64,000 nt of DNA from Lepidodermella squamata (Eukaryota; Animalia; Gastrotricha), in contig JBLDXI010000031.1 of assembly GCA_047495785.1 (NCBI GenBank), positions 806,001 through 870,000 of the forward strand, in the 5' to 3' direction. Below are positions 26,407 to 64,000 of the stretch, one piece after another; positions within the stretch are counted from its first letter, which is position 1, and every line of letters starts with the position of its first letter. The notes beneath the pieces were generated by a model. The model saw only the letters and a list, made by a program, of their open reading frames with translations. It had not been told where the DNA came from and searched no databases. The position numbers were made by a program, and so were the translations under genes.

Positions 26407-29160
26407 TCAAGGCGTTCCGAGAATCTGGGGACATTTGCTAGGGTCTACAAGATCGCTGCACGCTATTTGTTGGTTAATTGAAGAGCCAAGTCCAGCCAGG
26501 TTTGTGAAACGCACAATCTCAGCCTTCTCGCACGTTCCGTATTTGAAATATATCCCGGCCTAATGAAATGAACATTTTTGATAATAGGAAGATGAAGTTG
26601 ACATGGTTTACCAAGACCAAGCTTGAGTCTATGTCCGTTACTTGATCTCGAGGCTTCACAAGCGTTAACATCGCCCCGTTGACCAGATTACATGCCGAAA
26701 AACCTTCATGAGTCGTGGGTATGAAACACAGATAAAAATCATTGAATTCACAGCCTGATCCAACTTCTGTTGTCAGCCTTCCAGAGACATAGCCATACCT
26801 ATTGTCAAGAAAGCATGGCTCCTCAATAGAGCAGCTTTCTGCTGTGGTTACTGCATTTGGCATCCTAAGTCCGATGACGTAAACATTTTCAGACCACATG
26901 CTTTCAAAACTTATCGCCGCAAGTGCTATGTTATTTCGGCCATAGCGGTTGATATGTAAAGATTTTCCTAATAACTCTAAGACCGTGAAACCATAGGATT
27001 TGTAGATAGTCTTATAATCCTTAGAGTTGGCATTAACGCAGATATCGGGCAGTAGAAGGTAGCGATCCTCCAAAATCGCTGTTAGGCATTCTAAGCCCAG
27101 TTCAGTCCTTACGATGTTGAAGAAAGGGAACTGAGCGGGATCAATTGGCAAAGGTCCTTCTTCTGTTGCGAATTCAGGAGCCGTGGGGAATTCACTGTCT
27201 GCCATAGCTTGCCCGCTAATTTGCCCAGCCAGCCTACTTCGGCATACATCGTGAAGCTGAGCCAACTCATCGTAACTGAGCCACGTGCGATAAATAGTCA
27301 GACAAGATATCGCATCGCTTGAATCGCCATTTAGAGTCAAGCTAAATTGTTTCGTTGCCACGGTTGGTTTGTGGTAAATGAAGTAGACCATACCAAAGTA
27401 GTTGTACACAAAGAAATTATTAGAATTAAGCGTAATTGCGACAAATGTCCATTCCTCGTCGGTGATAACATCTTTCAGATTGAAATTGACTTGATCACTT
27501 TCAAGGATAAGATCTCCATCATTGTTTATTCTGAGGATGAATGACCACTCATCTAGTTCCAGGATCTTCCTGTCATTTCGCTTGGCACTTTTGCGTAAGA
27601 AAAACGCCACGCTAAAACTGTTTTCGATTTCCATTGGCAGATCAGTGGGTTTAACATGCAGAAGCCCGCGTGTAATGGCCATTGCTGTGTTTTTAGTGCC
27701 GAAAGGCCCGTCAACATAGGTAAGAGGCTCAGCTCCTAGTGTTTTGGTACTCCGAAAGCGGAAGGGGCCAATATCGATATTGGTGTTCTTAAGGTCAAAC
27801 AGCCACATTGCGATTAGATACATAGGCCTCGGGGAGAACAAATCTGTCTGAAAACGTAAATAATCAACATCCGATAAATAGCTTTTATGGCATGCCTAAG
27901 GCGGAAATCGAATTAATATGTAATCCTCGGAGCCTTAGCTGCCTTGTCAGTTCGCGACAGATCCTAAGCTCATCGCCAGTCAATTTTGCGGATCTTTTCG
28001 TATGCAAGAAAAATTCTGCTTTCGTTTGATTATAGCAGGATTGCATCGGAAAATCACAGGTTATGCCGCCATCTTTCAAGCTGAGAATCAAAACTTCCAT
28101 TATCGGGAAACCCACCCCATAGAAAGCATCCAGAATCTGAGAACAATGTGATTTTCGATGATTCAATGCACTTTGCATACTTCAATATACCCTGTTAACA
28201 GCGGACTGTCGAAGATCACTTCTGCCTTCACTTGGACGCAAAAACGGTTCGTACTGCTTGTCCTCCATTTCAAGAACACCACGAAATGCAGCTGTTGTGT
28301 AACGTAGGACATAGGAAATAAGAAAATTCTTTCTAGTATTAGATCTGCTAATTCATGAATTTTCCCCTTTGAACTTTTGCCCACTACACTTAACGAATTA
28401 ATAACGAAATGCCTTGTTATCGGTTACCTGGCTGAGTTGTGGAGGTTTCTTGGTGGTACAAAGAGCACGTTGAAATCACTTCCTTCATATCATCAGCCGA
28501 AAGAGCTATGTTGTAGGCCACAACACAGGAGAAAACTTCCCGATTCGTAACTCCCGCGGAAAGGGTCTGCTCTCCATGGCCAGTATCAATCGAAATATAG
28601 CCTGCAAGGGAAATTCTAGAAGGGATTGTGACCAGATTTTCCATTTCGTAAGTTGGCTCTTGTCCTACCAAGAGGCTCAAGTCGCCGGCATCTTGGAAAC
28701 TCAAAGCGATGAAATAAAATCGTCCCGGAGTGAAGTTAAAGCTGTTCCAAAATTTCTTTGTATACGATGGTCCCCTGACAGACACCAGAATGTTTTTAGA
28801 TGCATCAATTTCTAGGCTGATATTAGAATCGAGCGATCTGATTGTTGCAATTCCAATTTCACGAGCTTCAACAGTGTCTGAGAGGAAAAACAGCCCGAAT
28901 GTGAGGTCTTTTGAGGGAGGCAGCCAGTAAAGATTAAGTGGCCCGGTCGCTGATGCCGATGTTCTGAGAAATCCGAATGGTCCTGTGATATCACTGGAGA
29001 TTTCAGCATTATCGTCGCCGAATCTCTTGGACTTGAAGCTGACATCATTACTATCCGATAATCTGTCATAGGTTACGAGAAGAATCGGTTCAGGAATATT
29101 GCTGGTTGATCTATTAAAGCAACAAGTAAAACAAACGAGAAGGAACAACAGAATAATCAT
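26407..29160 (-). CDS. LamG-SEA-like-LamG-pseudoprotease family member A; apparently secreted (no anchor)
   Basis: Signal peptide, IPEP.L...D / GPFG / FSC LamG-like exon, second LamG-like plus dead trypsin exon (27841-~26610); last exon AGIYFKYGTC...CPQILGTP-stop. Confidence 0.7.
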
Positions 29161-29734
29161 GGGATTTTTATCTCTAAATGGATGATGAATTTTCACTCAT
29201 CGAAGTGTGAGATGTTGTCTTCTTTTGGCTCTTATCAGCATTAAGCGATATGTTATTTCAGGTCAAGTCCACGATACGATGCGTTTTATCGAAAAAGTGA
29301 TGAGTGCTTTCTCTGCTTTAATGTAAGTATTATGTTTCTCGCCTCAAAAAATTCATACTGTATTCCACGTCAAAACATGAATTCCCGGTTTTCTTGCTTC
29401 GGTACATATAACATTCGGTTTCTGCTGTTATTGGGAAAGTTCCGGAAACGACTATCCTCCAAAATTAAAGAAATACAATTGGATGCCGGCCTTTTGAGTT
29501 CAACTTACCCTATTCGTTAGTATGGGTGGACATTTTCTTGTCTCTATTTGAATGACGTTCAGTTCCTGAAAAATGGGTATCGATGTCTTGTGTAAAGCAA
29601 AATGTGAATACTTCAAGTTGTAGAATTAAAACAGGCTCTAGAACGTATAGTTTCTACTATCCGATACTATTCGATACACGATACTATTGCCCGGTATAGT
29701 GGATTGATTTAATACCAGAATCGCTTATCCGGTC

Positions 29735-33347: not shown

Positions 33348-36219
33348 TCAAAAGGCGAGCACGGCAATGGAAGCGACAAATTGTAACAGAATGCAATTAG
33401 ATTCAGATTTGATAGCTGCATTCCGGCCATCTGTCGTTGCAATTACAGTTGTTTGAAATGAAACTAATGTGAGATCGGGACTTGTTGACGATTCGACCGT
33501 GTCTGCTGAGGTACTTTTACCTTCAGTCGACATTGGACTTGTTGCTTTTGGGGTGGTCGATATCGAAAATTTCGGTGAAAAGGTGGTTCCAATCTCGTAA
33601 ATGGGACATGCCATACCGGAGGCTGATAAAGAACCACAGGCCGCTGTTTCCTGAATCCATTTATTCAGCCTAACAATGCTTGCGAAACGAACCACTGTGG
33701 ACGAACTGCAGTTCGAATCTCCAAGATACATTCCCCCCTGAAGAAAAATCAAGTCAGCATTCCAGTAATAGGTAGCTATACTTCGAATTCTTTCACATAC
33801 CAAAATCAAGCGAGGCTGAGTCTGCGACTGAATGGCCGAGTCCGAAATTCTTAGAAAGGACAGGGTTGCACCTGGAAGCAGGTTACATACAGAAAATTTG
33901 TCACTGTTAGAACCTGGTTTCACGCAAATCACGTCATCTGTTTGACATCCAGGCTCAGATGTAGCTACAGTTCCCCAGAAATATTCTTTATCGCAACCCG
34001 GTCCTGTATGCCCATAAATGAATACGGGAATCGTCCAAATCAAGTCTGTCCCTGCGTAGGTGGTTAGAAGACCGATATTATTGTAGCCTGAAGGACTGAT
34101 TTCGAAGGATTCGCGGGCATAGACTATGGCTAATCCGTTATTCGTGCCCAAGGTAACATCAGAGCTAGGATTCACACAAGATTCAGTAGTCACTAGGTGG
34201 TGACCATCGAGAATGGCCCATACGCATCTGTTTACATGGAGGTAGAAGCGATGAAATTTGAATACATCGCAGGTAGGGTCGTTTTCTGGGAAAGGCAACA
34301 GCAACTGCCCGCTGCTACCAATCGACTGTCCCATCTGAAGGGGGGTGATCATCGCACGGCATGCATCGTAAACCTTCATTATCGCATCGTGGCCGAGAGG
34401 TTCGCCGTAGATGGTCAAACAAGCAATTTCATCAACACCATTGTACAAAGTGAAGGAAAAACGGTCTGTTTTGCTGAATGTTGAAACATCAGCAGAGAAA
34501 ATGAGCCCAAAATAATTGTAAGCCAACAATGCGCTGCGATTTTGAGCAAAGCTCAAAAAAATCCATTCTCCGACTGGAAGAATAGGTTTTGGAAGATTGA
34601 ACACCTTTGAATTCGACATTTTCATTTCAATCTCGCCGAGAACGTTGATTGACAGCAGGAATCGCCATGCTGGTAGTTGGAATAGCGCGCGGCGAATCAC
34701 TCGGGGACTTCTGCGCAGGAAGAAAGCCAAGGACCATCCGTTATCGATGGCGTATTTCAATAAGGAGGTTTTTATTTCTATATCCGCTTCTGTCAAGTTC
34801 AGAGCGCTACTTTTGGAATCAAATGGCCCGTCGACGTGTTTTGTGTTCTCGTTTGGTAGCCACAACTTTTCACGAAATCGATTCGGGCCGATATCTCGAA
34901 GTTTGTACTTGTGATTGAATGGCCACAAAGCGACGATCGAAGCCGGCTTTGGATGAAAAATCTCTGAAAAAATACAAACTTCTTGTTTCTTGGGCTATTT
35001 TGAGTCTTTTCCTACCCGTGTTGACAGAAAGTATCTCAATTGCAGGAGATTGCATTCTAGCTTCAATTTCTCGGCAGAAGATTGCATTTGATTTACCTAG
35101 GTCATATTTGACTGACATTTTGACGTAGCCGGCAAACGTTGCAAGAACCATTTGGCACGAAGTATTTCCTTCGCAAACAGCAGAGTAAGATGATAGTTCC
35201 AACATTTGCACAGCGTTGTCTCCAATTAACGGAATTCCGGCTTTTACTATTGAATTTCGCACCTGCAAAATGTTAAATTAGCCGTGAAATTTAAGCCTAA
35301 TACAGCGAAGCTAACATCTTTCATCGCCTGCATGGATATCACCGCTCTATCACCACTGCCGTGAATGCCGTACGATGCCTTCCAAGTATCATTCATGAAG
35401 TAATTGCCGACCAAAGTCGCTGCAATATAAAAAATAAGGAATTTATATGGGGAAAAAAGAAAAACCTGGCTGTTCGAGGGAGGCCCTCAAGTGGAAGCCT
35501 TTGCATAATACTATGACAGCTTCTAAATCCTCGTCGCTAAGGCGCGAATCAAACGCGGAAATGCAGGAAAAAGCTTGTCTATGAGTGATGTTCTCAGCAC
35601 CGGCTCGGCCAAATGTAACTTCAGGACGGACATTATTAGGGATATTGCCGGCGAAATACGTAGGAGAAGTATATAATTTGAACAAAGGCTCCGAGCCGAT
35701 TGTCATCGTTACATTTTCGCTGTCTACTGATGTGACTGCAATGAAGAAGAACGTTGCAATGGGATAAAATGAAGCTTTCATGACTAAATCGGTTTTGTTT
35801 TGAGAGTTGCTCTTCAGCTCGAATTTCCATCCCGAGTCGAGATTTCTGTAGATGTGAAATGTTAGGGTGATTTCCCAATCTCCTCTTTTATGCGAATAAA
35901 CCCCCACTGAACCACTGAACGTGTCCAATAGGAAAAAGAAGCAATGCGTGAAATCATGAGAAGCAGCGCGCGGTAGTTTGTACGAAACCAGCCCATCAGC
36001 GCTATCGTCAACCAACTGCGCTGAGGTTTGCAGAAATCCGAATGGCCCGGCTAATTCTTTAGACAGTGTCATTGGCTTGCTCATAGTTTGTTCCGCTGCA
36101 CCAATCACGTCATTTGTGCCTCTCAATCTATCCATCGGAAGTTGAAGGACAGGTTGAGGTAGGGATGACGCGAAATCACTAATCAGTGATAGACATAGGA
36201 TTATTTGAATGACGGCCAT
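33348..36219 (-). CDS. Family member B: LamG-SEA-like-LamG-pseudoprotease-S/T stalk with a GPI-type C-terminus
   Basis: Same exon structure as the paralogues; ends ...TTDGRNAAIKSESNCILLQFVASIAVLAF-stop (hydrophobic tail, no cytoplasmic part). Confidence 0.8.
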
Positions 36220-36512: not shown

Positions 36513-39500
36513 ATGACAGCACTAATACTTGCGATGTTCAGTATTTTGGCTTCAGCGGCTTCTTTACCAGATCCCCTCCTATTTTTACCGTATGATCGGA
36601 GTGCAGGCGTCGCTGAGGTAAGCGGTAAAGCCAGAGTCCTGAGTTCGGCCAAAGTAGCACTCGTTAAAAACATGGCTGGTCCATTTGGCTACTTGCAAAC
36701 TGCGGCACATCTTAATGATGAAAACATGAAATATCTCGGCCTGTACGAGATTCGCTCGAATGGCTTTGTTTACATCAGGAATTTCTCGATCAGTCTCTTT
36801 TTCCATTCCGATTCAGTCGCCAGCGGCTCAGTTGGGGTATTAACATACGAGCGGCTCAACTGGTTCGTCGACATTTCCTATTCAACGGACACGCGAAAAA
36901 TACTGGTCACATCGAAAGAAAGTTGGCCTGATACTCTATGGCAAAGCAGCGTGTTAGAGCCGGGAAAATTTGTGTTCATCGCAATTTCATCAACAGATAG
37001 CTATACCTTCGAAATAATGATAGGCGAAGAGCCCAACTACGGCGAATTGCAGACAATCGGCCCATTTCGTGAAGAATTCCCTGAGGCTGTTTTGCCCAAA
37101 ATCTACATCGGAAAATCAAGCTTCGGCATTACGTATCGCGAGTCGTTCTCTTGCATTCTCGGATACGAGGCTAAATTTTCGGAGGAGGAATTTCGGGAGG
37201 TCATCGAATTTTGCTCAAGTACACACTCAAATGCAGCAAAACTGCAGCCAGGTGAGATTAGCACCCTCCAAAATAATCACCTGTGATTTCCCACATTATC
37301 CACAGTCTCGCTTCACGGGTTGTATTACCTGAAAGATGAATGGGATTCAGAGTATGACATAAAGCAAAGCCACAGACGGATAATTATGCGCGATAAAATT
37401 AGAGACGAGGTATCTTCAAGAACTGAGACTTGCCTTACACTATCTTATTTATTCAAAGGTTGGATCTCTGTTAGTTAATGCTGGTCTTAAAACGTATGGC
37501 ATAGTCTCTACAATCGAGATTCGTCCGGATATGTCAGATTGCGACGGACGAACTTGCAGTCGAGCTCTAGCAACATTCCGAGCCACGATTTTACAGCCTA
37601 TCAAGTACACTCCGACAACATCAGAAAGCGAAATGTGTCGCGAGATTGAAGACCTAATCGGCTGCGTAGACGTACGAATTATGACAATATCTCTAGGTAG
37701 GAGAAGTTTAATACTCACATCAATGATAATTTGATAGCTTCTCTTTTCAGATGTGGCTTATTACAGGCCATTTTCTCTAATCGCATTTCTTCCATTCAAC
37801 AAGCTGAATGGAGCTGTGGATTTGAGCCCATATAGGTTCCGGAGCCCATTCGCTGAATTAACGCACATTGATGGTCCTTTCGGAGTCAAAGAAGGTGCAG
37901 CTCTCATAACAACAGTCGAAATCGTCGAGATGATGCTACCTTTCGCAGTAGAGAAAGGGTTCTCTGTAGCGTTTTATCTTCGGAAAAGCTCAGCAATCGC
38001 GAGAAGGAATGTTATAGAGCTTCCGGATTGGAGTTTCTCAATATTGGTGGATTTCAAATGTGACCTAATAATTGGTTTATCTGACCGTGAATATTGCCTT
38101 AAAAGCGTTCTGCTAACTGAGGAATGGACCTTCCTAGCCCTAGTTCATAATGATACGGGCATTTTTGTTTACAACGCCTTTGGGCTCGTTTATCTGTCGA
38201 AATCTTCCAATTACACGACTAATGCAAAATTCAGCGTTTCCCTGCAAAATGGCGGATTGGATGCGATAGCCTGCCTTTCGATCTATCGTGAATCATTGAG
38301 TATTCATGAGCTTTTCCTGGTCCAAGGAGCCTGCCGTCACGTGTTAAGCCCACAGCAGCTACCTGGGCAAAGAAATCCGAAACAAAGTGCTCACCCCACA
38401 TCACCGTTCCCGACATTTAACGGGCCTTTAATAGCTGAGTCTGACCAATTTCCGTTTTTCACTAAAGTTATCTATAAATCTGAGTCTTGCCTAGCAGCAA
38501 TGCTTGACGAACGTCATTTCCTGCTGCCTTGGAGGTGTGCTGAATCGCTGTCGGCTTCGTCTAGACGAGATTTTCGCATCCTCGGTACAAAAAATGAAAT
38601 ATCGATAATACGCCTTGACAGACGCGTGGAAATAAGCCTAACTGGGCCAAATAACATTGGGCTATTCACTAAATATGCCGCAGTCGAAGATATTTGGGTC
38701 TACTTTGTGTACGTAGTTGGTCATGAAACCAGCAACTACGACTCGGTTGATTTCTACTCTGGATTGGGTTCAGGCAACTCGTTGGTATGTGTAGATGACA
38801 AGAATTACGAATATCTATCAGGGTTATTAACTACGGAAGAGCCCGGGTGTGATTCAAATGACTACCTCTGCTTCAAGCCAACATCAAATAATGGCTTTTC
38901 GCCCTGTAACCTAACAGAGGGTGCAACTCTGTCATTTTCTACGTATGGTGGTGTAGTGACTGATGTTGGAAGTCATCTTATCTTGGTAATTGCTTAATTT
39001 GGTAAACCAAGATTCTGATTATTCTACTTTTTTAGGGAGCTATGTATCTAAAGGACAAGTTTTGCGAACCTTCAGGAATCGCTAAATTTGTCAACATTGT
39101 CAGTCTTAGTGAATGGATCCAGGAGACAATTGCTTGTATTTTGCTGACCGAGAACGACCTCGAATGTCCCTTTGAACTCGATGTCAATCCCACGCTAAGC
39201 TCTGTGGTTGAAAATGTAACATTAATCGAATCAGCCGGTGCAACTCCGATATCTGTTCTGGCGCAATCGACCTTGAAACAAACTGATGAAAATCATCAGA
39301 CAAGCTCTGTATCATCGGCAGGCGAATCAATCCAGACCGGAAGTATACTTGCACCATTGATCCTAATGGATTCAAACTAATTATTTGATTTCAGGCCGTA
39401 TAGCTATGGCCGTGATGGCCGCAACTGGCGCTGTGGCCATTGCCTTCGTCGGGGTTTCATTTTATTGCCTGTACAGATTGAGGAAGAAAGCGAGAGAGAC

Positions 39501-40565
39501 TAAAGTTCTCAAAGAAACACCGTCAGTAGAACTGGGAAGTCAATTGACCTACATAACACCTTTCAACGACTTCAAAGAACTGCTTGATATGACTGACGAA
39601 GGTCGTGATCTCGTACCCTTGATCGAAGAAATCAATATCCAAGGCAACTGGCTTGAAGCATCTGAACTAATCGGGCAGGGCTTTTTCGGGGCAGTTTACA
39701 AGGGTATCATGAAAAAACCAGGCTGCATTCAAGTTGAAGTGGCTCTCAAGAGTATCTTACCTGGGGCGTGTGAAGACGTGGTTGCGTTTGTTAAAGAAGC
39801 GCTTATCATGAAGGAATTCGACCACGAAAACATTCTGCCATTACTTGGAATAGCCTCACTCGACGGCCAGCCCAACATTGTCGTCCCCTACATGGAAAAG
39901 GGAAACTTACACCGGTATCTCAACTCATATGAAGCTGAACTCTGGAATCAAGAGGAACTGCTTGATTTCGCAAAACAGATTTGTCGGGGCATGGCTTATC
40001 TTTCCTCGCGAAATTGCTTACACCGCGACCTGGCATGCCGCAATATATTGGTGTCTAATGATGAGGTTTTGAAGATCTCCGACTTTGGTCTATCTCGTGT
40101 TGTATCAAGCGAGCATCTATACTACAGGGCAAGTGATGCTAGCAACACCCTTATCCCGATAAGATGGTACCCTCCAGAGTCGCTTTGCACTCAGGTTTTT
40201 CTGCCTAAAAGTGACGTCTGGTCTTTCGGAGTTGTGGTTTGGGAAATCTTCTCACGTACGCTTACTCATTTTGTTTTCCGTTGTATACAATTATTGACAT
40301 TGCATCTTAGTATGCCGCGAGGAGCCGTACGAAGGACTGAACAATTTTGAAGTAATAGTTCAAGTGACGAACGGTTTGCGCCCAAGTCAGCCGAAAATTT
40401 GCCCTCACAAGGTGTATGTAATATCATTATTTCATATGGATCGCATGAAGGAATCTGCGTTTTCTTCAATCTAGGTTCAACAATGTCATCCTTGAGTGTT
40501 GGAAGTGCCCCGAGGATGTGCGACCCTCTTTCGCCGAGCTAGCGAATGCCATGGAGTCCTTTTGA
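36513..40565 (+). CDS. Family member C: receptor tyrosine kinase with LamG-SEA-like-LamG-pseudoprotease ectodomain
   Basis: Ectodomain exons linked by short introns to a TM (IAMAVMAATGAVAIAFVGVSFYCLY-RLRKK) and a kinase: GQGFFG, VALK, MKEFDHENIL.LLGI, HRDLACRN, DFGLSR, PIRWYPPE, DVWSFG, CW....RPSF. Confidence 0.88.
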
Positions 40566-41364: not shown

Positions 41365-42348
41365 TTAGAGTGGCATGATAAAATACGCCAATACATTTAA
41401 ATAAAGCAAAAAATGCATTTTCAACATTTCAAGTGATCCATTATTTTGAAATCCGGATGTGAAATCTTGCCTCGAAGTAACCATCTGAGTAGAAATAGCC
41501 GAAGAATTGTTTAAGGGGGAATTTAGTTGAGTTGTTGTAGAAGGTTTTACTCCAACAATTCGATGCTCATGCTTGCACCTTTCAATCATAAATTGAGGGT
41601 ATGGGTATGTATTGAAGAGCGTCTCGTTGTAAACAGACAGACAGGAAATGGCATCGGAAGATTGCAATCGTTTGTGACCGGTTTCATTTTTACCGCATGG
41701 CAAAGCGGATCCAAGGCGAATAATTAGGCCAAGCGTTGGATCGGCACTGAGAAACGCTGAGCCATCCCCATATGCTATGAACAATGGAAATGAACTTATG
41801 TCATAGTCGTAGACTCGAAAATTCCATTGCGAGAGGTAAAAGTCGAACAAAACAAAATGCCACACGCTGTTCCTTAAATTAGTCATTAGAAGAGGAACAG
41901 CCCGCTCTTCACCGAAGCAAATATCCAGCTCGCCATCACCTGAGTATCCAATGGAAACCAGATTCTCTTCATTCGAGGTTATTGTCAGGATTCCACCGAC
42001 ACGACTTGCTAATCCTGTGTCCGACAGGTAAAAGAAAAATCCAGCTATAATACTTTGATTTGGTAGTTGGTGAAGTTTATACTGTGCCAGCTCGCAGCCG
42101 TCTGCTGACCGCGAGGTGAAGGCGGTTTTGGGCATTTCAAATGGCCCCTTCAATCCTGCAGCCACCAATGCACAATCGTAGTTTTGAGTTAGCGTACTGG
42201 CGACGCCATCAACAGTGTCGAGTCCTGTTCTCTCGCTGAGAGGCCACAATCCCAAAACATTACTTTCCAACGACCCAGACAAAGCGCGCACCCATATTGC
42301 TGCAAGCAAATGAAGAAATTTATAGTTAGGTATCGAACGAAAGGGCAT
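41365..42348 (-). CDS. Intronless single LamG-like domain protein with a GPI-type tail (member D, distant relative)
   Basis: Signal peptide; LGLWPL, GPF, GFFFY, WHFV, DAISCLSVYN motifs shared with the family; S/T stalk; hydrophobic C-terminus. Confidence 0.7.
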   Translation of the reverse strand: MPFRSIPNYKFLHLLAAIWVRALSGSLESNVLGLWPLSERTGLDTVDGVASTLTQNYDCALVAAGLKGPFEMPKTAFTSRSADGCELAQYKLHQLPNQSIIAGFFFYLSDTGLASRVGGILTITSNEENLVSIGYSGDGELDICFGEERAVPLLMTNLRNSVWHFVLFDFYLSQWNFRVYDYDISSFPLFIAYGDGSAFLSADPTLGLIIRLGSALPCGKNETGHKRLQSSDAISCLSVYNETLFNTYPYPQFMIERCKHEHRIVGVKPSTTTQLNSPLNNSSAISTQMVTSRQDFTSGFQNNGSLEMLKMHFLLYLNVLAYFIMPL

Positions 42349-42614
42349 GAAACTGAAGCAATGTTGCTTAGGCAAAAATGAGTTTATTATGCCCCCGTCA
42401 TATGGAATTCTTATCTCTTGTTTCAATAAAAACGATTTCCAGGCAACAGGTAATGAACTTGGACTGTGACCATACGTGTGCTAGGCCATACGCCTGTCGG
42501 CTTTTTCGAGGTCAATGGTTTGCCTAATCATATGCTAGGTGCTACGCACATCTGTCACAGTGGAGAAATTTGAATCTATGACGAAGGCTCATGGGCGCAA
42601 GGAAATAATGTAAA

Positions 42615-45390: not shown

Positions 45391-45579
45391 GAATCATTTC
45401 TGAAATCAACAATCTTACTGCACGAATATTAGCGGAAGAAAATGTTTTCATCATTGAAATTAAGAAATTAAGAACGCATGAGGTTATTTTAATACCTAAC
45501 TAATAATAGCGTATTTACGTGATTTTGATAATCTTAGTCTTTGGCTTCGACAATTAACCTTGAATGCTGATTAGCTAGA

Positions 45580-45964
45580 TAGCCTCCAGGTTTCAGGTCA
45601 ATATCCATCCCATATGATATAAATCCGTATCAGGTAAAAGGCCTTTTCCAGCGCCTTTGAACATAGACACCACTAAAAGTCTATACATCAAAATCGTTAA
45701 GTTGTATCGTTCGTTCAGTGGCAATTGTAGCTAATTCCTGATGTGTCGTAGTGGCAGATGTAGCCGATGTTGCCAAACGGGCCGGCAAGAACTGGGCTGA
45801 TACTCTGATAATCAGCTGGATCGCAAAATTTCGTTGCTTTCCCATTCAGATCTATTCATCCTGATTGCCTGATGCCGAACGGCACAAATAGGACGGGATC
45901 TGGTATTTCTGCACCATTAAACTAGAAAGCAGCGGTAAAATAGGTCAGGTATAGTCAGCTTCAT
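45580..45964 (-). pseudogene. Decayed first exon of another family member (duplicated at 50024-50408)
   Basis: Reads MKLTI...*FNGAEIPDPVLFVPFGIRQSG*IDLNGKATKFCDP...VLAGPFG with stops and frameshifts. Confidence 0.7.
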
Positions 45965-46220
45965 TACGGAAAGATCAGGGATCCGACTAGGTCCAGCTCT
46001 GATGGGGGTAAATCGAGCATATACAATAATAGGTTCTGGGAAAAATTGCTCAAAGGAAAATATATTTTTTGCAGCACCATCTGTCATTCCTGGCAACATA
46101 ACACCCCGTTTTGTGATATCAATCGTAATTTCTATACTCTAGACGAAACTGGGTAACTGGAGGTTTTAATTACACTGAATATGAGACTTTAAGACGTTTT
46201 AAAGTTAAGTGCTCATTCTT

Positions 46221-48683: not shown

Positions 48684-48788
48684 TATTGCCTTAGTTGTAA
48701 TTTTAGTCAGCGGGCGGATTTTTGGTCGGAGGCCGCCAGGCCGGAGACCAAAATCCGCCAGCTGACTAAAATTGCAAATAAGGCAATA
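48684..48788. mobile_element. 105-bp hairpin MITE (copy in unit 1)
   Basis: Copy of 53128-53232. Confidence 0.7.
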
Positions 48789-51305
48789 TACTTATTATCA
48801 CCCATCTGCGACTTGTCCTAGTAGTAATCCGCGTCACGACGGAAAAGAGACTGATTTTTTTTCCTTTGGACTAAGACACAAGGACTTCGTAAACATTAGT
48901 CGGGCTTCATTTTTCCGAATTTTGATTCGAAAGCTACTAGCATGTTTTAAGCTGAGTTTTGGAGGTTTGAATAGATTCTTTTTAACCGAAGGTGACAAGA
49001 ACGGCTCAATTTCAGGTATTTTCAGTAATTATTTAGCTTTCAGGTGATGTAGATTGTCAGACCTAGCTCTATATTATCTACTGTAAAAACAATTCCGTTT
49101 TTTGTTTAAATACAGTTTTAGGCGATAAATTTCAGTTGCCATCAAACTGCCCCTAAAATGTATAGAGGGATCTAACCCTATTACTCTTTCCGGCCTGCAA
49201 TTCGATATTCATGGCATTGCTATTGATTTCAAATTAAAGCACCAGCTGATCGAAAATTGGCAATTGGCAAATCCAAAAATTTTGATCACGTTGAACAAAT
49301 TAATCTAAAATTAATGAGAACGGTGTCTTTTCCTCAAACCTGTTCTAATCTCTTGAATTCTGGAATTATTCTGAATCTCTGCGTAGAAAACGGGGTGAAT
49401 TGCTCTAGTCAAATTAGAACGAATTATTGTCTCGATTCAATATTGAGCTCTATTCCATTAGCCAAGCCATTTTAGTTAATTTTTTACTATTTTCAACGTG
49501 GCCTTTTACCTTTACCTAAGCCAGGAATTTGTTGGAGCATGCTCTATTTTCGCCATTTTCTCCTTAACCTATTTTTTTGTCCTGTCTCTTTTTGGGTTGT
49601 CTTAATTTTTGCTCTGCCATCTGACGGCTCTGAGTTGACCTTCGTTCGAGTTAAGACAAATCAGACCGGCGGCTCGCTCATAAAATCCGCCGGTCTGATT
49701 TTAATCCGAACAATGGTCAACACAGTGGCGCCGGAACAACGATTACAGCTCGTTCAACGACGGATTCTTGCGGCGATAAAGTGGGATTAAGCCTCCCTTT
49801 GTTTATCGCAGCTGCCTGTGTCTCATTTATGTGAGAATCATTTCTGAAATCAACAATCTTACTGCACGAATATTAGCGGAAGAAAATGTTTTCATCATTG
49901 AAATTAAGAAATTAAGAACGCATGAGGTTATTTTAATACCTAACTAATAATAGCGTATTTACGTGATTTTGATAATCTTAGTCTTTGGCTTCGACAATTA
50001 ACCTTGAATGCTGATTAGCTAGATAGCCTCCAGGTTTCAGGTCAATATCCATCCCATATGATATAAATCCGTATCAGGTAAAAGGCCTTTTCCAGCGCCT
50101 TTGAACATAGACACCACTAAAAGTCTATACATCAAAATCGTTAAGTTGTATCGTTCGTTCAGTGGCAATTGTAGCTAATTCCTGATGTGTCGTAGTGGCA
50201 GATGTAGCCGATGTTGCCAAACGGGCCGGCAAGAACTGGGCTGATACTCTGATAATCAGCTGGATCGCAAAATTTCGTTGCTTTCCCATTCAGATCTATT
50301 CATCCTGATTGCCTGATGCCGAACGGCACAAATAGGACGGGATCTGGTATTTCTGCACCATTAAACTAGAAAGCAGCGGTAAAATAGGTCAGGTATAGTC
50401 AGCTTCATTACGGAAAGATCAGGGATCCGACTAGGTCCAGCTCTGATGGGGGTAAATCGAGCATATACAATAATAGGTTCTGGGAAAAATTGCTCAAAGG
50501 AAAATATATTTTTTGCAGCACCATCTGTCATTCCTGGCAACATAACACCCCGTTTTGTGATATCAATCGTAATTTCTATACTCTAGACGAAACTGGGTAA
50601 CTGGAGGTTTTAATTACACTGAATATGAGACTTTAAGACGTTTTAAAGTTAAGTGCTCATTCTTTTACTGATTGATAACATTGATATATTTGTTTCCATT
50701 TCCTGAATTTTCGCAATTTGTTATATTTTTCGAAGTTTCAGAGATCTGAAGAGGACGTAAGTCAATAATATATCGTTAACGCGTCCATACAGGGCTGGGC
50801 TATGATATTGATTCACAGCAACACCCCTGACATTTCCCATTTGAGGCGAAATTTGTGACTTTTTCCGTTTTTTGCACAAACACCAGGCAGCAATTCCAAT
50901 CACAAGAACGGCGAATGAGCAGCTGACTGCTGGTATTACTGTGGTAACAATTGATCCTACTTGAAACAGACCGAATACATACTTTAACGGAAATACTGGA
51001 TAAAAAAGTCATTACCTTCGTATGATTGCGTCGTGCTCTTCGTCGCTGGAACTGTCGTCAACTCGGTTCTCAAATTGGTGAAATTGTGGCCCGATGATGT
51101 TGCGACAGCCGCTGTCATCTCATAACCATACAAGAACTTTGGACATTCCGCCCCCGAAAACGAGCTACAAGCTACAGTTTGGTGTATCCAGCTGCTAAGA
51201 TTATCAAGGCTCAAAAAGCGGGCATATGGTCGATTCACACAGTTTTCTTCCCCCAAGTAAATCCCGCCCTGATAATTGAAATATTCATAAGTGATTAGCT
51301 AATAA

Positions 51306-52838
51306 CCCTGAGCGACAATTTCGGGCCATTTAACTGCCTAAATCAAAAAAACTAAATATGCAAATTAGCGAGAGTTTGTCTGAGGACAGTATTCTGTTGA
51401 AAGTGTAGTTTTTTGCGGAGCTGGGCCAGCGGAACCGCGATGAGAGTTTCGCTGTGAGAAATGGTTTGTACTGCGCAGTCACTTACTGCGATACTAAAAC
51501 TTTCACTTCGGGCCGTTAGTACTTCGCACTTACTGCTAAAAACGCGACCTGCACTGCAGCTTCAAAAAAGACAGTTTTACCCTTCTCACGTCCGTCGATG
51601 TAATCATTTTATTCAAGTATGATTTTTTTAATCAAAACTGATCAATAAAAAAATTGAAAAATTGTCAAGTTAATAGTGAATGATTTTTCACGAGACGCCA
51701 TGCTCGAACAACGGCCGTGACCGATGCAGAAAACCGCCACTGGAGCAGGCCCGATAACCTGTAGAAATTAATTTAAATTAATAATTTAAATTAATTGAAC
51801 ACGAAAATACCTTGTTAATTTTTCATCGATACCATTACGAATTGCTGACCGGCTCGTTCAGACTGGTTGGACAGCAAAATCGATTCGCGGGACAAGCCTT
51901 CAAAAATTGCGGGTAAATTAAAGAAAATGGAATTAATTTCAAAATTACCTTGAATATTCGATAAATATCTAACTTGACCAAATTGCATGGTCGGCACACC
52001 TGGTGGCAAGGCGGCAAGGATTGATGAAGCTCAAAATGCGAAATTGAGGCCGGACGAAAATTCTTACTAAATAGGACATGTCATTGATGTTTTGGAATTA
52101 AAAACAAAAATAAGATGATTTGAATGAACCAAAAAGCCACATTTTTGAAGCATGGCCTGATTACGCAACACCCCGAGGCATGTGTGCACAACAATCGACT
52201 GCCATAATAACAATGATTTTGCCCTATTTCAGCTTTTATTTAGAACGACAATTTTCAGTCATTAAAAATGTTGCTTTTACGAAAAATCAAAATTATCGAA
52301 TTTTTCTAGCCTCCTTATTTTCTTAATGGTTCAGGCTGAAAACGATAAAAATTCGGTTATGTTTAGGATCCAGGTAAATAATCAGTAAAAATTAGAGAAA
52401 ATCGGGAAAAAAACGAGGAATTTCATGATAAATAAAAACAGTTTAATCCGGATAGGTAGAAGGCAGTTTTTCGAGCCAGGGAATTTTCAGCAATGAAAAC
52501 TAGAGGTCGAGGATCGAATTTCACTTTGGTTTACTACTTCTCAGTTCTCACTTCGAAATAGAGAAAATTCGAAAGTTTTGTTAACGGTGACGTAGAAATA
52601 TTTCAACTGGCAGTTAACTTCGGGTCGTAAAACCGAAATTCCCAAGTTTCATGAAAAAACTGTGTCAATTTCGCGAAGTGACTGGTTTCCAGCTTTAACT
52701 TCCAGTTTTTTCCAAAAACTGCAGTTAGTTTCGAAAAAAGATGAAAAATGACAGTAAACGGCGTTTTAAGGCAGTTTCCTGCAATTCCCACTGGAACTTA
52801 GCAGTATTTCGCAAAAAACGTGCACTTGCTGCTCAGGG
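51306..52838. mobile_element. CACTA/EnSpm-like non-autonomous element in an intron of member G
   Basis: Termini CCCTGAGCGACAA / CCCTGAGCAGCAA, 2-bp AA duplication; removal leaves a ~54-nt intron, typical of this window. Confidence 0.65.
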
Positions 52839-53127
52839 AATCATAGTAAAAACTTGCCAAACGCATTCTGGGTTTTTTGTGTCGTACATAATCGTAGTCA
52901 GTAATGAGAATTAGCGCAGTTCCGACGGTTATTCTACAGCTGTCGAAACTCTCATCTGAAAGCGGCGTAAAGCAAATGAACGTGCCTGAGTCGCATTCGG
53001 GGAATGAAGTGGTGATGGAACCAGAAACATTATAAAACTCGAATTCCAAGTGACAGTGTGGCGAGCCACATCCTTCTCCTCTTGGACGATATCCAATGAT
53101 ACGTATAGGATACCACCAGTTATAATA

Positions 53128-53232
53128 TATTGCCTTAGTTGTAATTTTAGTCAGCGGGCGGATTTTTGGTCGGAGGCCGCCAGGCCGGAGACCAAAATCC
53201 GCCAGCTGACTAAAATTGCAAATAAGGCAATA
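53128..53232. mobile_element. 105-bp hairpin MITE, TA-flanked
   Basis: TATTGCCTTAGTTGTAATTTTAGTCAGCGGGCGGATTTTTGGTC is nearly the reverse complement of GACCAAAATCCGCCAGCTGACTAAAATTGCAAATAAGGCAATA. Confidence 0.75.
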
Positions 53233-54226
53233 TACTTATTATCACCCATCTGCGACTTGTCCTAGTAGTAATCCGCGTCACGACGGAAAAGAGACTGATT
53301 TTTTTTCCTTTGGACTAAGACACAAGGACTTCGTAAACATTAGTCGGGCTTCATTTTTCCGAATTTTGATTCGAAAGCTACTAGCATGTTTTAAGCTGAG
53401 TTTTGGAGGTTTGAATAGATTCTTTTTAACCGAAGGTGACAAGAACGGCTCAATTTCAGGTATTTTCAGTAATTATTTAGCTTTCAGGTGATGTAGATTG
53501 TCAGACCTAGCTCTATATTATCTACTGTAAAAACAATTCCGTTTTTTGTTTAAATACAGTTTTAGGCGATAAATTTCAGTTGCCATCAAACTGCCCCTAA
53601 AATGTATAGAGGGATCTAACCCTATTACTCTTTCCGGCCTGCAATTCGATATTCATGGCATTGCTATTGATTTCAAATTAAAGCACCAGCTGATCGAAAA
53701 TTGGCAATTGGCAAATCCAAAAATTTTGATCACGTTGAACAAATTAATCTAAAATTAATGAGAACGGTGTCTTTTCCTCAAACCTGTTCTAATCTCTTGA
53801 ATTCTGGAATTATTCTGAATCTCTGCGTAGAAAACGGGGTGAATTGCTCTAGTCAAATTAGAACGAATTATTGTCTCGATTCAATATTGAGCTCTATTCC
53901 ATTAGCCAAGCCATTTTAGTTAATTTTTTACTATTTTCAACGTGGCCTTTTACCTTTACCTAAGCCAGGAATTTGTTGGAGCATGCTCTATTTTCGCCAT
54001 TTTCTCCTTAACCTATTTTTTTGTCCTGTCTCTTTTTGGGTTGTCTTAATTTTTGCTCTGCCATCTGACGGCTCTGAGTTGACCTTCGTTCGAGTTAAGA
54101 CAAATCAGACCGGCGGCTCGCTCATAAAATCCGCCGGTCTGATTTTAATCCGAACAATGGTCAACACAGTGGCCGACTGATTTTAGGACCAAGGCATAAA
54201 TAATTTCAGAGGGGTGATAATAATTA
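53233..54226. mobile_element. ~1-kb non-autonomous TIR element inserted in a coding exon of member G
   Basis: TIR core TTATTATCACCC at both ends, TA-flanked; no transposase ORF. Confidence 0.65.
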
Positions 54227-57200
54227 ATATAGTCGACATTATCAGTGAAAATACCAATGTTATTAACAGTTTCTTGGCTTATCTCTAGAGCCTGACTGAG
54301 CTTGAGAACAGCCAATTTATTGCTGGAGCCGATCATTTGGAAGCCACTTGACGCTTTTGCGCAGGATTCCGGCAAAATAACGTGTCGCTCGTCCAAAATC
54401 GAGATCATACACACGCCAGAGGCAGAACGAAATGGTATGAAGTACGGGTATCTGATAGGATCGTCTATTGATACTGTTGTTAGGTTCACCTTTTGCAAAC
54501 CTTGACCGGCCATCATTTGAGGCATAGCTCTCAACCTGCAGCCATCGTGAACCTTCAGAACATCTTCGTAACTCAGCGGAATATCGTAAATTGATAAGCA
54601 GAAAATAGCGTCTTCCCCAGTTCCGCTCAACCTCAAGTCAAACATGCTGGTAGGATAGAAACTTGTTTCATTCGTGAAGTATATCAGTCCAAAGGCGTTG
54701 TAAACAAGCAGCCCGTTACCATTATTGACAAGGCAAAGGAAAGTCCAAGAATCATTTGGAATCGCTGCTGCTAGAGTGTATGTTTCGTTGTGGTTTCGAA
54801 CCTTCAGTGCGCCTTCGCTGTTTATCGACAAGTGGAGCGACCACTGCGGAAATTCAACTACATCTCTACTTTGTCTTGTCGATGATTTCAAGATGAATAG
54901 GGCAATAGTGTATCCGTTAGTGATGGGCAGGTTGATCGGTTGAATTTCAACGAGGCGCTCAGATATTTTCACCCCACCTTGTTTATTGGAACTGAACGGT
55001 CCGGTAATGAAACTAGGTATCCCGGACCTGCTACCAATGGTATCGCGAAGTCGGCGTCTGCCCATATCGTTGATCCCGCTGGCCTCGTCGAATGGCCACA
55101 CAGCTATCAGTGAAAGTGGCTTGGCGTACGGCAAGACTATGAGAAACCCAGTTAAACTGTAATCTAATTTGAATTACATATTGCGAACCGCGAGCAACTT
55201 ACGCAAAGATATTGTATGAATTTGGATAGCTTCTGATCCAATTTCTTGCTCAATCTCGCGGCATATTTCTTCCTCGGATTGATAAGGTGAAAATATCACG
55301 GGAACCTTTCCTTGAGCTTCAAATTTAGCCATTATTTTCTCACATTTCTCACCGTGACAATGCCCAGTGTACCTCGTCAATTCGACAGTATAGACATACC
55401 AGCGGAGAAAATGTCCCACTTCATTCAACAGTCGCGAAACCTAGATCATAAAAATACTTATCTATGATATATGTCATCAGCTGAGGAACCATAGGAAACC
55501 TCTATGCTAGCAGTGTTTATGATTTTCTTTCGGGCATCGCTGGTGCGCTTCGAAATATCAGGATGCCAATTGTATTCCATGTAGTAGAGCCCCAACAGGT
55601 TTACTGTTGGTGAAGCATAAGCGGGAAATTGATTTTCCAAGCTGATAAATATTTTTAATCCTACCGTTCGGTTGCCATGTTGCAAATTGCTGGTATTCCG
55701 AACACAGCTCAATGATTTGCCTTAGCAGTGAATGTTCGTAGATGCTCATTTGATAGCCGGTAAGACAAGAGAAATGTTCCTGATTAGTGGCTCCAAGAAG
55801 GCCACCAATGGAGATTTTCGGCTCTGCTGCCGCCGATATTTCGTAGCCGTCGAATGGACCAAGTGTTTCTAGCACGTAACTTGGCTCCTCGCCAATGGTC
55901 GCTAGAACTTTGTTGGTAGTCCACATTGTTAGTGTGATGAAATAAAATTTAGCCAATCGAATCGTTCGAAGGTCTGCAATCAGCCGTGTCGCTTGATTTT
56001 CAGAGCCTTTAAGACTCAGCATTTGGTTTGACGCGTTGTACGAAATAATCAGAGTCTTGTTCTGGCGCTCGCACGCAATTACTTCAACCTCGCCACTTCG
56101 AGAATCTGAGTAGAAGAACACCGAAATCGTAAGGCTGTTGTGTATTTCGGCAGATGGTAGTGCGAACGCATCCAGAATTGCTAGTTCCTTCTGAGTCGTA
56201 GCGAATGAGGTTCCGAGGTAACCGAATGGACCGGCGATCTCTAAATCACCAATAACATCAGCTGTCCCGCCCAACTGTTTGGCTTCTCCGCTCACATCTT
56301 CAGCTTCATGTAGCATGTCGTAAGGTACCAGTAGAACGGGATCTGGCAATTCCGCGGAAGAAAGGAAGATGTTAGCGGCGATATAGATCAGAATAAGCAG
56401 ATCCATTTTTCCGAAAGATGGTTTAAAGCCAAGGAATTTTTATAAGGTCATCTGCGGTGACGTAGAACCCTCTTATAAAATAGAACACAGATGTTTTATT
56501 TCGAATTAATTGATAAACATTTTAATTTTAAATGTTAACAGATTCAAATGCGATTGATTTGATTTAATGGGAAGTTCTCTTGCCAATCGCTAGGCTCATA
56601 TAGATTTCTTATCGTTTTCGTTCATGAGATCATTATGAGCCAAACATATGACGTGCCGGCATCTGTTGTTAATAAAGTTGGATCGAATTCTAGGTTAATT
56701 TCACACGCCGAAAAAGCCTCGAAATTTTGGAGAATTTAAGGAATGATTTTTGGTGAATTGCTCATTTTTGACGCTTTTAAACTGACTTCACCCCTCAACC
56801 CTACTATTGAAACAAATGCGGCAACCGCTGTTGATCGATTCCGGCCTATAGCAGCCTGCATCCCTTTGCCCATTTAATGTGAAACCTGAAGTGGCACACG
56901 TCCAAATATATCGGATCTACAGAAAAACCCTGGATACAATTGCCAGCTCCCTCCCTTAAAATTCTTCTGTCTCACTTCTGTCTCACTCTCAAGCAAGGAG
57001 CCACTGATTTACGGATTGCCGCGAATTGAACCCAAAACGCCGTTCACAGTGTCAATATTCTTTTACACCGACTCAACTAGCGGCGATGTCGAAATTTGTA
57101 TGCTGCCGTATGCGCCCGTATTCGTTGAGAATATTCGGAATTCCTGAAAACTTAAGATCAGAGAAATTGAAAATAAAATTTCAATCATTTCTAAGCTAAT

Positions 57201-57467
57201 CCCTGAGTCCAATTTTCAAAAAATAGCGTTAGCTATTGCTCGCTTCGCTCGCAAAGAGATGAATTTTTGTTTGGCCTTGATTGATAGTTTCTGAACTTCC
57301 TCAAATTTCAACGCTCAGCTACAGCCTTTCGCGCACATGTGCGCACGCATAGGCGCAAAATTTGTTTCGTCTTTTATCAGGAATTTACAACAAATTGGGC
57401 CGCCAAACGTCAAAAGCCCAGGGGCCGCCAGAGGGTTAATCCGGCCCTGGGCTCTGCTAGTACGATA

Positions 57468-57650
57468 TGGTGCCGGAACGAGTTGTATGATGCCGGAACG
57501 ATGGATAAAACACGTCTACATTCGACGACTTTTTCTTGCGGCGGGAAAGTGGGATTCAGCCTCTCATTGTTTATCGCAGCTGCCTGTGCCACATTCGCGC
57601 GATAGCCCGTTCTGAATTGAAAAATCTTACTGCGGGAACTCTAGCGATAG
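57468..57650 (+). pseudogene. Orphan 3' relic of an E-like gene (GPI-type tail and 3' UTR)
   Basis: STTFSCGGKVGFSLSLFIAAACATFAR vs E STTDSCGDKVGLSLPLFIAAACVSFM; downstream UTR also similar. Confidence 0.7.
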
Positions 57651-62099: not shown

Positions 62100-63154
62100 T
62101 TAGAAATAAAAATAGCATTTGAAAACTGTTGAAAGAGAGAAACCGATTTATTGGTGGTCTATGTTACGGGTATTTACTGTAACATTGCCTTATAGACACA
62201 GGATTATGTAATTAATTGATAATACAGATTGGTATGTTTCATAAATACTGAATGTAATTCATAAATACAATTTGTATTTTCCTTTGTTTCATAAAATCAT
62301 GGGAAATTGTGATGTGAGGTGAGTTGACTTTGAGGGTTTTTGAAACTGGGGTGTCCCGAAGTGGTCGCCTGATGGTTTTCATAACACTTGAATATTGCGA
62401 AAATTTGGTTCATTCTTAGTCACCTTTCCAGGAAAAATCTTCAAAAATAGCGATAGCTGAGTTCGCTCGCATCCAATTTTATTCGACTGAAAACCGTCTA
62501 AAGTTGCAGTTGAGAGCCGAGTTCATGTAGATTTTGAAGAAATTATGAGAAAAAATGCTGTAAATTGAGTGACATTTTATAGTTTGGACGCGAAATGTTG
62601 GAAGTTTTGAGCATATTTTCCCTCACTGAAAAATGGAAAAAATGGAAAAGATCGCTAGGGGCCGCAGCCTGGTAAAGAATTTTGATTTTGGGGTCGCCAA
62701 GTGTTAGGGGTTTAGAAGGCCTGTACTAACCGTTTCCCCGTTGACTAGGCCTGTTTCAAATAATCTCTAATTATCACATTTCCATTAGCAGAAATAAGTT
62801 TCCTACCTTTTACAGTGTTGTCTAAGGTATGAATAATACGATAGCCGGTGATGTTCTAACCAGCTGCGAATTTAATCTATTTGAAATTCGATTCGCAGTC
62901 ATGCCCGATACATCAATCGGACCTCCATTCAATCCGAGTTTTTCATCATTATACCAGATGGCGACGCCATATGCGGGGTTCGTAATAAACGAAATGACCC
63001 TGAAAACGATAAGAAGAATTGGCAGGAACCCTCGATGCAATTTATATTAAATTCATTTCTGAAAAGGTGGTTGTTCACCGCGCAATCGCAGATGTACCAA
63101 TACACATTTCACAGTTATAACCTGAATTTCAGCGAACTCTCTGACGCTAAAAAT

Positions 63155-64000
63155 ATGAATCTGCGCATCATAGTCTATTTTTCAGCTGGCATAGTGGCAT
63201 CTTTTGCACGATTACCTGATCCAATTCTACTCCTGCCGCTCGACATGCAATCTGGATTCAAAGATTTGAGCGGGAAGTCTAAACAGCTAAGCGAACCAGC
63301 TCATCTGAGCATTAGCCAAGTGATGGCAGGTCCATTCGGTTATTTAGGAACTTCCGTTTCATTTTCAAGCAACGAACCGCTGATTTATAGCTTACCGTTG
63401 ATCGATAATTATCAGCCGTTGACCATTTCAATGTTTTTCTACTTCGACTCAACAGCTGGTGATGTCGACATTTTCACCTACGAGCGTCGAGATAATTATC
63501 TCTTTTTGTCTGTCAACGCTTCGGGAGGAAGGCTAATTTTGAGGAGTTTCGAGAACGGGAAAACAAGAAGCATTGCTGAGCTTCGCGAAGTCCGGCCTGC
63601 CAACTATTATTTCATCTCTCTCGCAATTGCATTCAACGGCGTGGTTCTGGTAACCATAGGTGTTGAGCCAAACTACTCTCTCGAAACTGCAATTCCTTTC
63701 GATGGTCATACTACCATTGGATCTGCAGAACCAAAACTGTACATCGGCGGTCTGAATGGAGCATCGAATCGCGAGCTTTTCTCTTGTGTTACAGCGTATC
63801 CTACGTGCATTTACGACCCATTAGTTACGAAACAAATTGTTGACTTATGCTTGCAGCAACACCGAGCCGCTTCTTCAACGCGCCAACGAGGTATGAATCT
63901 ATTGAGGAATGACAATGATAACTATTTAAGCCCTTCAAGTGAGCTTGTTTGCCCACCGATATACGGAGACCGAATGGCATGCTGATTTCGGCAAGCTTCA
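63155..64000 (+). CDS. Family member J, 5' part (signal peptide, LamG-like exon, start of SEA-like exon); runs off the window
   Basis: Closest to member I (PLDMQSG.KDLSG, AGPFGYLGTSVSFSS, NRELFSCVTAY); donor GTATGA at ~63891. Confidence 0.8.

Follow-up and report, generated by a model that had tools for sequence, protein, structure and literature searches.

What kind of receptor is encoded by a set of genes that share an unfamiliar ectodomain, some of which end in a tyrosine kinase, and where does that ectodomain come from? The question is raised by a 64,000-nucleotide stretch of Lepidodermella squamata DNA (contig JBLDXI010000031.1, positions 806,001 to 870,000), here called the window, which is metazoan, with about 42% GC, long exons and introns of about 50 nt. 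Between 26.4 kb and the window end at 64 kb, eight or more related genes for cell-surface or secreted proteins are clustered on both strands. They belong to a lineage-specific receptor family, in which receptor tyrosine kinase (RTK), transmembrane (TM)-tail, glycosylphosphatidylinositol (GPI)-like and secreted formats lie side by side. The architecture of the ectodomain, which combines two domains of the concanavalin A (ConA)/LamG type, an orphan module and an S1 pseudoprotease, is previously undescribed as far as the databases and papers searched show. The data suggest that a secreted lectin/pseudoprotease protein has been joined to a kinase in this lineage and that the kinase-less paralogues would be binders, co-receptors or decoys, a reading that we consider likely.

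Gene structure and kinases of the family

A tblastn search with the exons of gene C, together with alignments of the two large exons, identified A, B, C, E, G, I and J as paralogues with several exons, D as a relative with a single module, and relics besides (Table 1). This agrees with the array described in the original prediction for this locus. Alignment A2 covers the first large exon (exon 1; eight window sequences, mean column identity 37%) and alignment A1 the second (exon 3; six window sequences, 40%). The motifs by which the family had been recognised are invariant or near-invariant columns in the exon alignments: LPxPxLxLPxD, GPFGxLxT and FSC in exon 1; WxFL, YNxFG, DAIxCLxxY and CxxxxLDxxHxLxPxxC in exon 3; and WIQETxAC in exon 4.

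Gene C is open for 1185 uninterrupted codons, from the signal peptide to a stop past the kinase, and its seven exons are separated by six GT-AG introns of 223, 54, 50, 52, 55 and 61 nt (phases 1, 1, 0, 1, 1 and 2). The best-scoring GT-AG junctions of gene I lie at the same alignment positions and in the same phases; only the exon 1/2 junction is ambiguous. Hydropathy analysis of both proteins gives a hydrophobic N-terminus and one TM segment, which opens exon 5 and is followed by a basic stop-transfer run, so that on hydropathy both have the generic RTK layout of predicted signal peptide, ectodomain, single TM segment and kinase. The kinase of gene C is the only part of the receptor with a direct Pfam match (PK_Tyr_Ser-Thr, PF07714, E = 2.7e-64). 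Its motifs are intact (GQGFFG, i.e. GxGxxG; VALK; HRDLACRN; DFG; and PIRWYPPE, i.e. PxRWxPPE), there are equivalents in I, and in both genes the kinase C-lobe is finished by two small exons. Hydropathy, Pfam and the catalytic motifs therefore bear out the claim that C and I end in a TM segment plus an intact tyrosine kinase, and both kinases are apparently active.

By its sequence, the window kinase cannot be placed with confidence in any known RTK family. Scored per domain against the PDB, MET gives 154 bits and Eph and Mer 146-148 bits, and kinases in the databases are at most about 45% identical to it and come from mixed families. To call it MET-like would be too strong, as the three score alike. 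EGFR appeared as the top PDB match, but this entry is a tandem-kinase construct and was scored twice. Nor do the genes belong to the MET/HGF-receptor family, as the ectodomain is unrelated to the Sema-PSI-IPT arrangement and the margin of the kinase score is slight.

The ectodomain and its metagenome relatives

The profile of exon 3 (A1), built from window copies only, has just 26 matches among 1.84 billion representative proteins (HMMER). The best of these (E = 9e-33 to 1e-13) cover both halves of the profile and are unnamed proteins from ENA metagenome contigs, headed by P0001 (9e-33), P0002 (2e-23), P0003 (1e-21) and P0004 (7e-19). Pfam recognises Laminin_G_3 (PF13385) in the first part of these relatives and Trypsin (PF00089) in the second, with E values for Trypsin of 1e-14 to 1e-24. 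Several are complete and secreted, with a signal peptide, two lectin-like domains, a trypsin-like domain and the end '...DWISQQMACALPG...KCPQ'; this type of ending, '...WIxQQMACxLPG...CP', is the same C-terminal motif as 'WIQETxAC...CP' in the window. One ENA metagenome contig of 7278 bp (L001) carries a tandem array of four intronless, kinase-less lectin-like/dead-trypsin genes (384, 746, 273 and 441 aa). Its proteins are the nearest known relative of the window ectodomain and belong to a family without a name in any source. An ESM Atlas look-up with the large exon of gene B gave no usable match.

The metagenome proteins (P0001-P0007, P0160-P0165 and those of L001) are true homologues, with E values down to 9e-33. 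They have the same order of two lectin-like domains, S1 fold and C-terminal 'WI..AC...CP', they have a dead triad, and they too occur in tandem arrays. In contrast with the window genes, they have no TM segment, kinase, GPI-like end, 75-residue module or introns, and they keep a segment of about 25 residues between His57 and Asp102 that the window copies lack. In some of them CUB domains take the place of the first lectin-like domain, and their identity to the protease-like domain of B is only 17-23%. No kinase was found in the 26 representative A1 matches (P0024 left out) or among the relatives of P0003.

A structure model of gene C exon 3 is consistent with the Pfam assignment of the relatives. 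Residues 1-213 (pLDDT, the predicted local distance difference test, 74-91) match ConA-like jelly rolls at Z scores of 17-19, among them the lectin-like N-subdomain of the clostridial neurotoxin binding fragment, carbohydrate-binding modules and sialidase lectin domains, and match pentraxin, TSPN and LamG-type domains at Z scores of 12-13. In this model the likeness of domain 2 to ConA and pentraxin is at the level of the fold only. A relation to clostridial neurotoxins was rejected, as the Foldseek match of exon 3 reflects the shared jelly roll only and the second half has an S1 fold rather than a beta-trefoil. For domain 1 the sole test was an hhalign comparison of exon 1 with the N-terminal Laminin_G_3 region of P0003 (E = 3.8e-5, probability 71%). 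PF13385 in the homologues and the fold of domain 2 place the lectin-like domains in the LamG/ConA superfamily at clan level.

Between the two lectin-like domains lies a 75-residue module on its own phase 1-1 exon. Five copies can be aligned (A4) and have a conserved cysteine and a helix-like motif, 'SExExCREIE'. Within the window the module is confined to this family, and it is absent from the metagenome homologues. Neither the five copies nor their profile had a match in Pfam, PDB sequences or the ESM Atlas, and the GSVVV-type autoproteolysis motif of SEA domains was not found in A4; the label 'SEA-like' is thus unsupported by all of these checks. The proposed order of LamG, SEA-like, LamG and dead protease consequently stands for three of its four modules, by homology and fold, but is unsupported for the SEA label, which had zero matches.

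The protease-like domain was examined in a joint alignment (A3) of window copies A, B, C, E and I with the metagenome homologues; G was left out. The A3 profile matches S1 proteases in the PDB at E = 6e-25, with haptoglobin and heparin-binding protein among the matches. The domain of B (33588-34361), the only copy on one exon, was modelled with AlphaFold (AF2; pLDDT 59, core 70-82), and its top Foldseek matches all have the chymotrypsin fold (E about 2e-4, TM-score 0.45); they include chymotrypsinogen, kallikreins, thrombin, HGF beta, protein Z and a scabies mite SMIPP. The profile homologues, the PDB match of A3 and the fold together make the domain a member of the S1 family (PF00089).

When A3 is mapped on a real protease, all three triad residues are replaced in every aligned copy: His57 by S in B, R in C, I in A, K in E and S in I; Asp102 by G in B, E in C, G in A, G in E and R in I; and Ser195 by P in B, E in C, N in A, V in E and L in I. 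The G exon has LPESC at the His57 motif and, by our own reading, K at Asp102. Because His57, Asp102 and Ser195 are all replaced, the domain should be unable to cut, and the window domains are, as judged from these residues, pseudoproteases. A zymogen activation site (R/K + IVGG) was not found, the start of the domain following a Pro-rich linker after lectin-like domain 2. The His-loop disulfide and further cysteine columns are kept in the window copies. The metagenome homologues are dead too (His57 to S, T or R; Ser195 to E or Q), and catalysis was therefore presumably lost before the fusion with the kinase.

Kinase-less paralogues, duplication and divergence

Gene A had been predicted to stop after the protease-like domain. 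It does end there, although an equivalent of exon 4, which that prediction missed, is present and carries a divergent version of the C-terminal motif. No stalk, TM segment or hydrophobic tail was found between this exon and the next gene, and the product is probably secreted. The GPI-like ends proposed for B and E are seen as hydrophobic C-termini of 15 and 17 residues, respectively ('...NAAIKSESNCILLQFVASIAVLAF' in B and '...DSCGDKVGLSLPLFIAAACVSFM' in E), with zero cytosolic residues and within the stalk exon in both genes. Gene D is 23% identical to the exon 1 family and has the invariant GPF, SC and C columns in common with it.

Gene G was described as having a TM segment and a short tail, and homology supports this: the TM segment and about 35 juxtamembrane residues are homologous to those of I (E = 1.6e-4), a stop follows, and no kinase remnant was found after the juxtamembrane part. 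Its stalk-to-TM junction matches those of C and I in place and phase. Because the TM part is I-like, this junction is shared and the tree described below makes G the sister of I, G is best read as an RTK that would have lost its kinase. Its protease-like exon is broken (54169/53043) by about 1.1 kb, a break that only weak splice sites bridge, and the following intron is 1.6 kb.

A self-blastn comparison showed that a 4448-bp unit, which holds the end of E's last exon, an exon 1 relic and the 3' half of G, is duplicated head to tail (45282-49729 = 49726-54173, 99.98% identical). Either the duplication happened very recently or it is an artefact of the assembly. One edge lies inside the last exon of E and the other, the right-hand edge, at the break in the protease-like exon of G; because the two coincide, G may be damaged. 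Thus the relics reported for this region are real, but part of them are mere copies made by the duplication. A further relic, between G and I, corresponds to a GPI-like tail of the E type.

Between paralogues the ectodomain exons are 26-45% identical (64% for I and J), whereas the kinases of C and I are 66-67% identical. For C and I the nonsynonymous divergence (dN) is 0.72 in exon 3 and 0.22 in the kinase, with synonymous divergence (dS) saturated, which confirms that the ectodomains have diverged far more than the kinases. As dS is saturated, dN/dS is unusable for most pairs. In exon 1 of I and J, the only measurable pair, a crude dN/dS of 0.33 indicates purifying selection overall, so there is no sign of diversifying selection as yet. 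In the tree the window copies are monophyletic with respect to the metagenome homologues (100/100) and G and I are sisters (97/95), which fits a loss of the kinase in G. The tree does not order A, B, C and E.

Other receptor-like genes lie in the window (Table 1). Three ORFs (open reading frames) of roughly 300 aa resemble Cys-loop channels, with weak Pfam matches to both channel halves (E = 6e-4 to 6e-3), and one of them lies between A and B. P0008 (1099 aa), to which the lectin profile gave a weak metagenome match, has both Laminin_G_3 and Neur_chan_LBD. Two large ORFs have an ANF_receptor (Venus-flytrap) domain followed by hydrophobic segments; the first of these had no match at E = 1e-20 among 5.8 billion proteins, and a fragment of a Ser/Thr-kinase-like gene lies just downstream of it. 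Amid the receptor genes lie ankyrin-repeat genes with at least 10 repeats (Pfam E as low as 1e-140), an UNC-93-like gene lies directly downstream of gene A, and there are two tandem lipocalin-like ORFs (Lipocalin_2, E = 1e-11 and 9e-16, respectively).

Table 1. Positions of the receptor family, its relics and the neighbouring genes in the window
Feature	Position	Strand	Description
Gene A	26410..29196	-	probably secreted
A exon 1	28417-29196	-	ectodomain
A module	27885-28178	-	ectodomain
A exon 3	26519-27841	-	ectodomain
A exon-4 equivalent	26410-26520	-	divergent '...SINQQIAC...CPQILGTP', then stop
Gene B	33348..36219	-	GPI-like form
B exon 1	35443-36219	-	
B module	about 34960-35220	-	
B large exon	33348-34928	-	526 aa: lectin-like domain 2, dead protease-like domain, 'WIQETAAC', Ser/Thr stalk
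Gene C	36513..40563	+	full RTK, 1185 aa, 7 exons
C exon 1	36513-37251	+	signal peptide, lectin-like domain 1
C exon 2	37475-37696	+	orphan 75-aa module
C exon 3	37751-38985	+	lectin-like domain 2, dead trypsin-like domain
C exon 4	39036-39342	+	C-terminal helix 'WIQETIAC', Cys pair, Ser/Thr stalk
C exon 5	39395-40255	+	TM, juxtamembrane part, kinase
C exons 6 and 7	40311-40413, 40475-40563	+	kinase remainder, stop
Gene D	41365..42426	-	intronless; single lectin-like module of exon 1 type, hydrophobic C-terminus
Gene E	42615..45390	+	GPI-like form
E exon 1	42615-43361	+	
E module	43599-43739	+	shortened, without Cys
E exon 3	43751-45079	+	
E last exon	45130-45390	+	'WIQKTVAC', stalk, hydrophobic end
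Gene G	50724..56406 (start about)	-	TM and short tail, best read as kinase lost
G exon 1	55558-56406	-	ectodomain
G module	55189-55428	-	ectodomain
G exon 3, N-terminal part	54169-55134	-	ectodomain
G exon 3, C-terminal part	about 52885-53043	-	ectodomain
G exon 4	about 51016-51268	-	ectodomain, stalk
G end	50724-50956	-	TM, 50-aa tail
Gene I	58171 to about 62095	+	second full RTK, same seven-exon plan
I exon 1	58171-58912 or 58936	+	3' end ambiguous
I module	59144-59356	+	own exon
I exon 3	59409-60583	+	ectodomain
I exon 4	60637-60889	+	ectodomain
I TM and kinase	60947-61792	+	
I last two exons	61852-61954, 62006 to about 62095	+	
Gene J	63152..64000	+	exon 1 only, runs off window; 64% identical to I exon 1
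Tandem duplication	45282..54173		4448-bp unit, head to tail
Exon 1 relic	45727-45918, second copy 50171-50362		within duplicated unit
Second copy of G 3' half	46280-48599		within duplicated unit
Relic of E-type tail	57540..57602	+	'GGKVGFSLSLFIAAACATFAR'
Lipocalin-like ORFs	383-1156, 2141-2707	+	tandem
Ankyrin-repeat genes	5466-6875 (-), 14801-16006 (-), 32485-33177 (+)		
Ser/Thr-kinase-like fragment	8025-8559	-	
ANF_receptor ORFs	9267-11213, 12948-14534	-	
Cys-loop channel-like ORFs	18920-19849 (+), 21854-22735 (+), 29735-30628 (-)		
UNC-93-like gene	24195-25264	-	

Proposed function, known systems and alternatives

We propose that the ectodomain descends from rare secreted proteins made of two lectin-like domains and a trypsin domain that would already have been dead. 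From the predicted signal peptide on, it would consist of a jelly roll, the 75-residue module, a second jelly roll, the degenerate S1 domain, a Cys-paired helix and a Ser/Thr stalk. A glycan or protein may be bound, with no catalysis, by the lectin-like and pseudoprotease domains; such a ligand may drive C and I to dimerise and thereby activate the kinase, as in other RTKs, and the kinase-less paralogues could act as co-receptors, decoys or soluble binders.

Non-catalytic proteins of the S1 fold use that fold for binding rather than cutting; the HGF/MSP beta chain, haptoglobin, protein Z, azurocidin, masquerade-type insect homologues and the scabies SMIPPs all combine a chymotrypsin fold with a substituted triad. 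These differ from the window family in being soluble ligands or cofactors outside receptor kinases, the similarity is at family level only, and the kringle, PAN, Gla and CLIP context of such proteins is seen nowhere in the window family. RTKs with lineage-specific, shuffled ectodomains include the Venus kinase receptors (review: PMC4026697), the choanoflagellate and sponge radiations, the discoidin-domain receptors and a Hydra lectin-type RTK. Such RTKs share with C and I the arrangement of signal peptide, binding ectodomain, TM segment and tyrosine kinase. In these systems, as proposed here, a new ectodomain was joined to a conserved kinase by exon shuffling and tandem expansion followed. We know of no such receptor with a ConA-like pair and a dead S1 domain. 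A full-text literature search likewise found no description of one, and no database protein with both this ectodomain and a kinase was found, so the claim that no described RTK class has this ectodomain holds for the databases and papers searched.

The plant L-type lectin receptor kinases also carry a ConA-fold ectodomain on a single-pass kinase, and clusters of plant receptor-like kinases and receptor-like proteins (RLK/RLP) mix kinase-bearing, kinase-less membrane and soluble paralogues that are receptors, co-receptors and decoys. The plant kinases, however, are of independent origin, are Ser/Thr kinases (IRAK/Pelle-type) and have no protease-like domain, so this is an analogy only. Most likely the family binds its ligands without catalysis and couples this binding to RTK signalling, in a way that would resemble the plant lectin receptor kinases.

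Several observations weigh against this proposal. Pfam has no match for the ectodomain exons, LamG and Trypsin included (E up to 1), and the window-only profiles have none among PDB sequences. Because there are no direct matches in either, the domain calls rest on transitive homology and on structure models of middling confidence (overall pLDDT 59-61, loops below 50). In the window copies about 25 residues are missing from the stretch that links the His57 motif to the Asp102 motif, the GPI-like tails of B and E were judged by eye only, and G is interrupted and may be damaged or a pseudogene, or the region may be misassembled. Additionally, no splice joints were seen in the only two sequencing runs that hold the locus, both of which look like DNA; one is probably the source sample and the other consists of short, low-depth contigs with strand-flip artefacts. 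This lack of RNA support, and the existence of kinase-less ectodomains in A, B, E and the metagenome homologues, would fit an account in which the kinase-bearing genes are prediction chimeras and a secreted or GPI-type ectodomain gene merely adjoins a separate TM-kinase gene. We regard such an account as very improbable. The gap between the stalk exon and the TM-kinase exon is 52 nt in C and 57 nt in I, is bounded by GT-AG, has a matched phase 1 and needs no stop or start, and the TM-kinase exon lacks a separate signal peptide. As the junction is conserved in two paralogues with saturated silent sites, separate transcripts are unlikely; G keeps it too, with the TM part only. The open frame of C and the intron positions and phases common to C and I argue for ectodomain and kinase being on one transcript. 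There is also little reason to believe that the array is largely decaying and that most of its copies are pseudogenes from a past expansion. The exon 1 relic and the tail relic (Table 1), the interruption of G and the erosion of the protease-like domain, with its deletions and low model confidence, would be expected from such decay, but the exons of A, B, C, E and I are long and open and keep the conserved cysteines and motif columns, C is open throughout, dN/dS is below 1 and the catalytic motifs of the kinases are intact.

The remaining alternatives concern what the receptors recognise. According to the original prediction, the cluster would be a diversified recognition system (innate immune, gut-lumen sensing or self/non-self). 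As a system for non-self, microbe or allorecognition, it would meet variable ligands with ectodomains that evolve rapidly, and its activating RTKs would be modulated by GPI-like and secreted members. This is possible, though we think it rather unlikely. A tandem array with many formats and relics would suit such a system, as would ectodomains that diverge far beyond their kinases, and lectin-like folds typically bind glycans. However, the I-J comparison points to purifying selection, the paralogues are old (dS saturated), so that divergence alone is no proof of diversifying selection, and fast evolution of the ectodomain is usual in any receptor family. A self-contained set of ligands and receptors, in which A, B, E or tethered modules would pair with the ectodomains of the RTKs in a homotypic or allorecognition code read by the kinase, seems improbable. 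In such a set the dead protease might play the part that the beta chain plays in HGF, and the two lectin-like domains that of the LamG pair in Gas6. HGF and Gas6 are both soluble RTK ligands, and the kinases of the receptor families concerned are among the nearest PDB matches of the window kinase.

RTKs gain ectodomains by exon shuffling, and to our knowledge few cases show the source family and its products together. If the joining of a secreted lectin/pseudoprotease protein to a kinase is the correct reading, one locus would hold kinase-fused, kinase-lost, lipid-anchor-like and secreted versions of such an ectodomain, with already-dead, non-receptor ancestors recognisable in metagenomes. The family would be a tractable example in which a signalling receptor has taken over an enzyme fold as a binding module, and may be an animal counterpart to the plant lectin receptor kinases and their kinase-less partners. 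Should its ligands turn out to be glycans, microbes or its own paralogues, the family would amount to a new recognition system, in an animal lineage that is early-branching or poorly studied.

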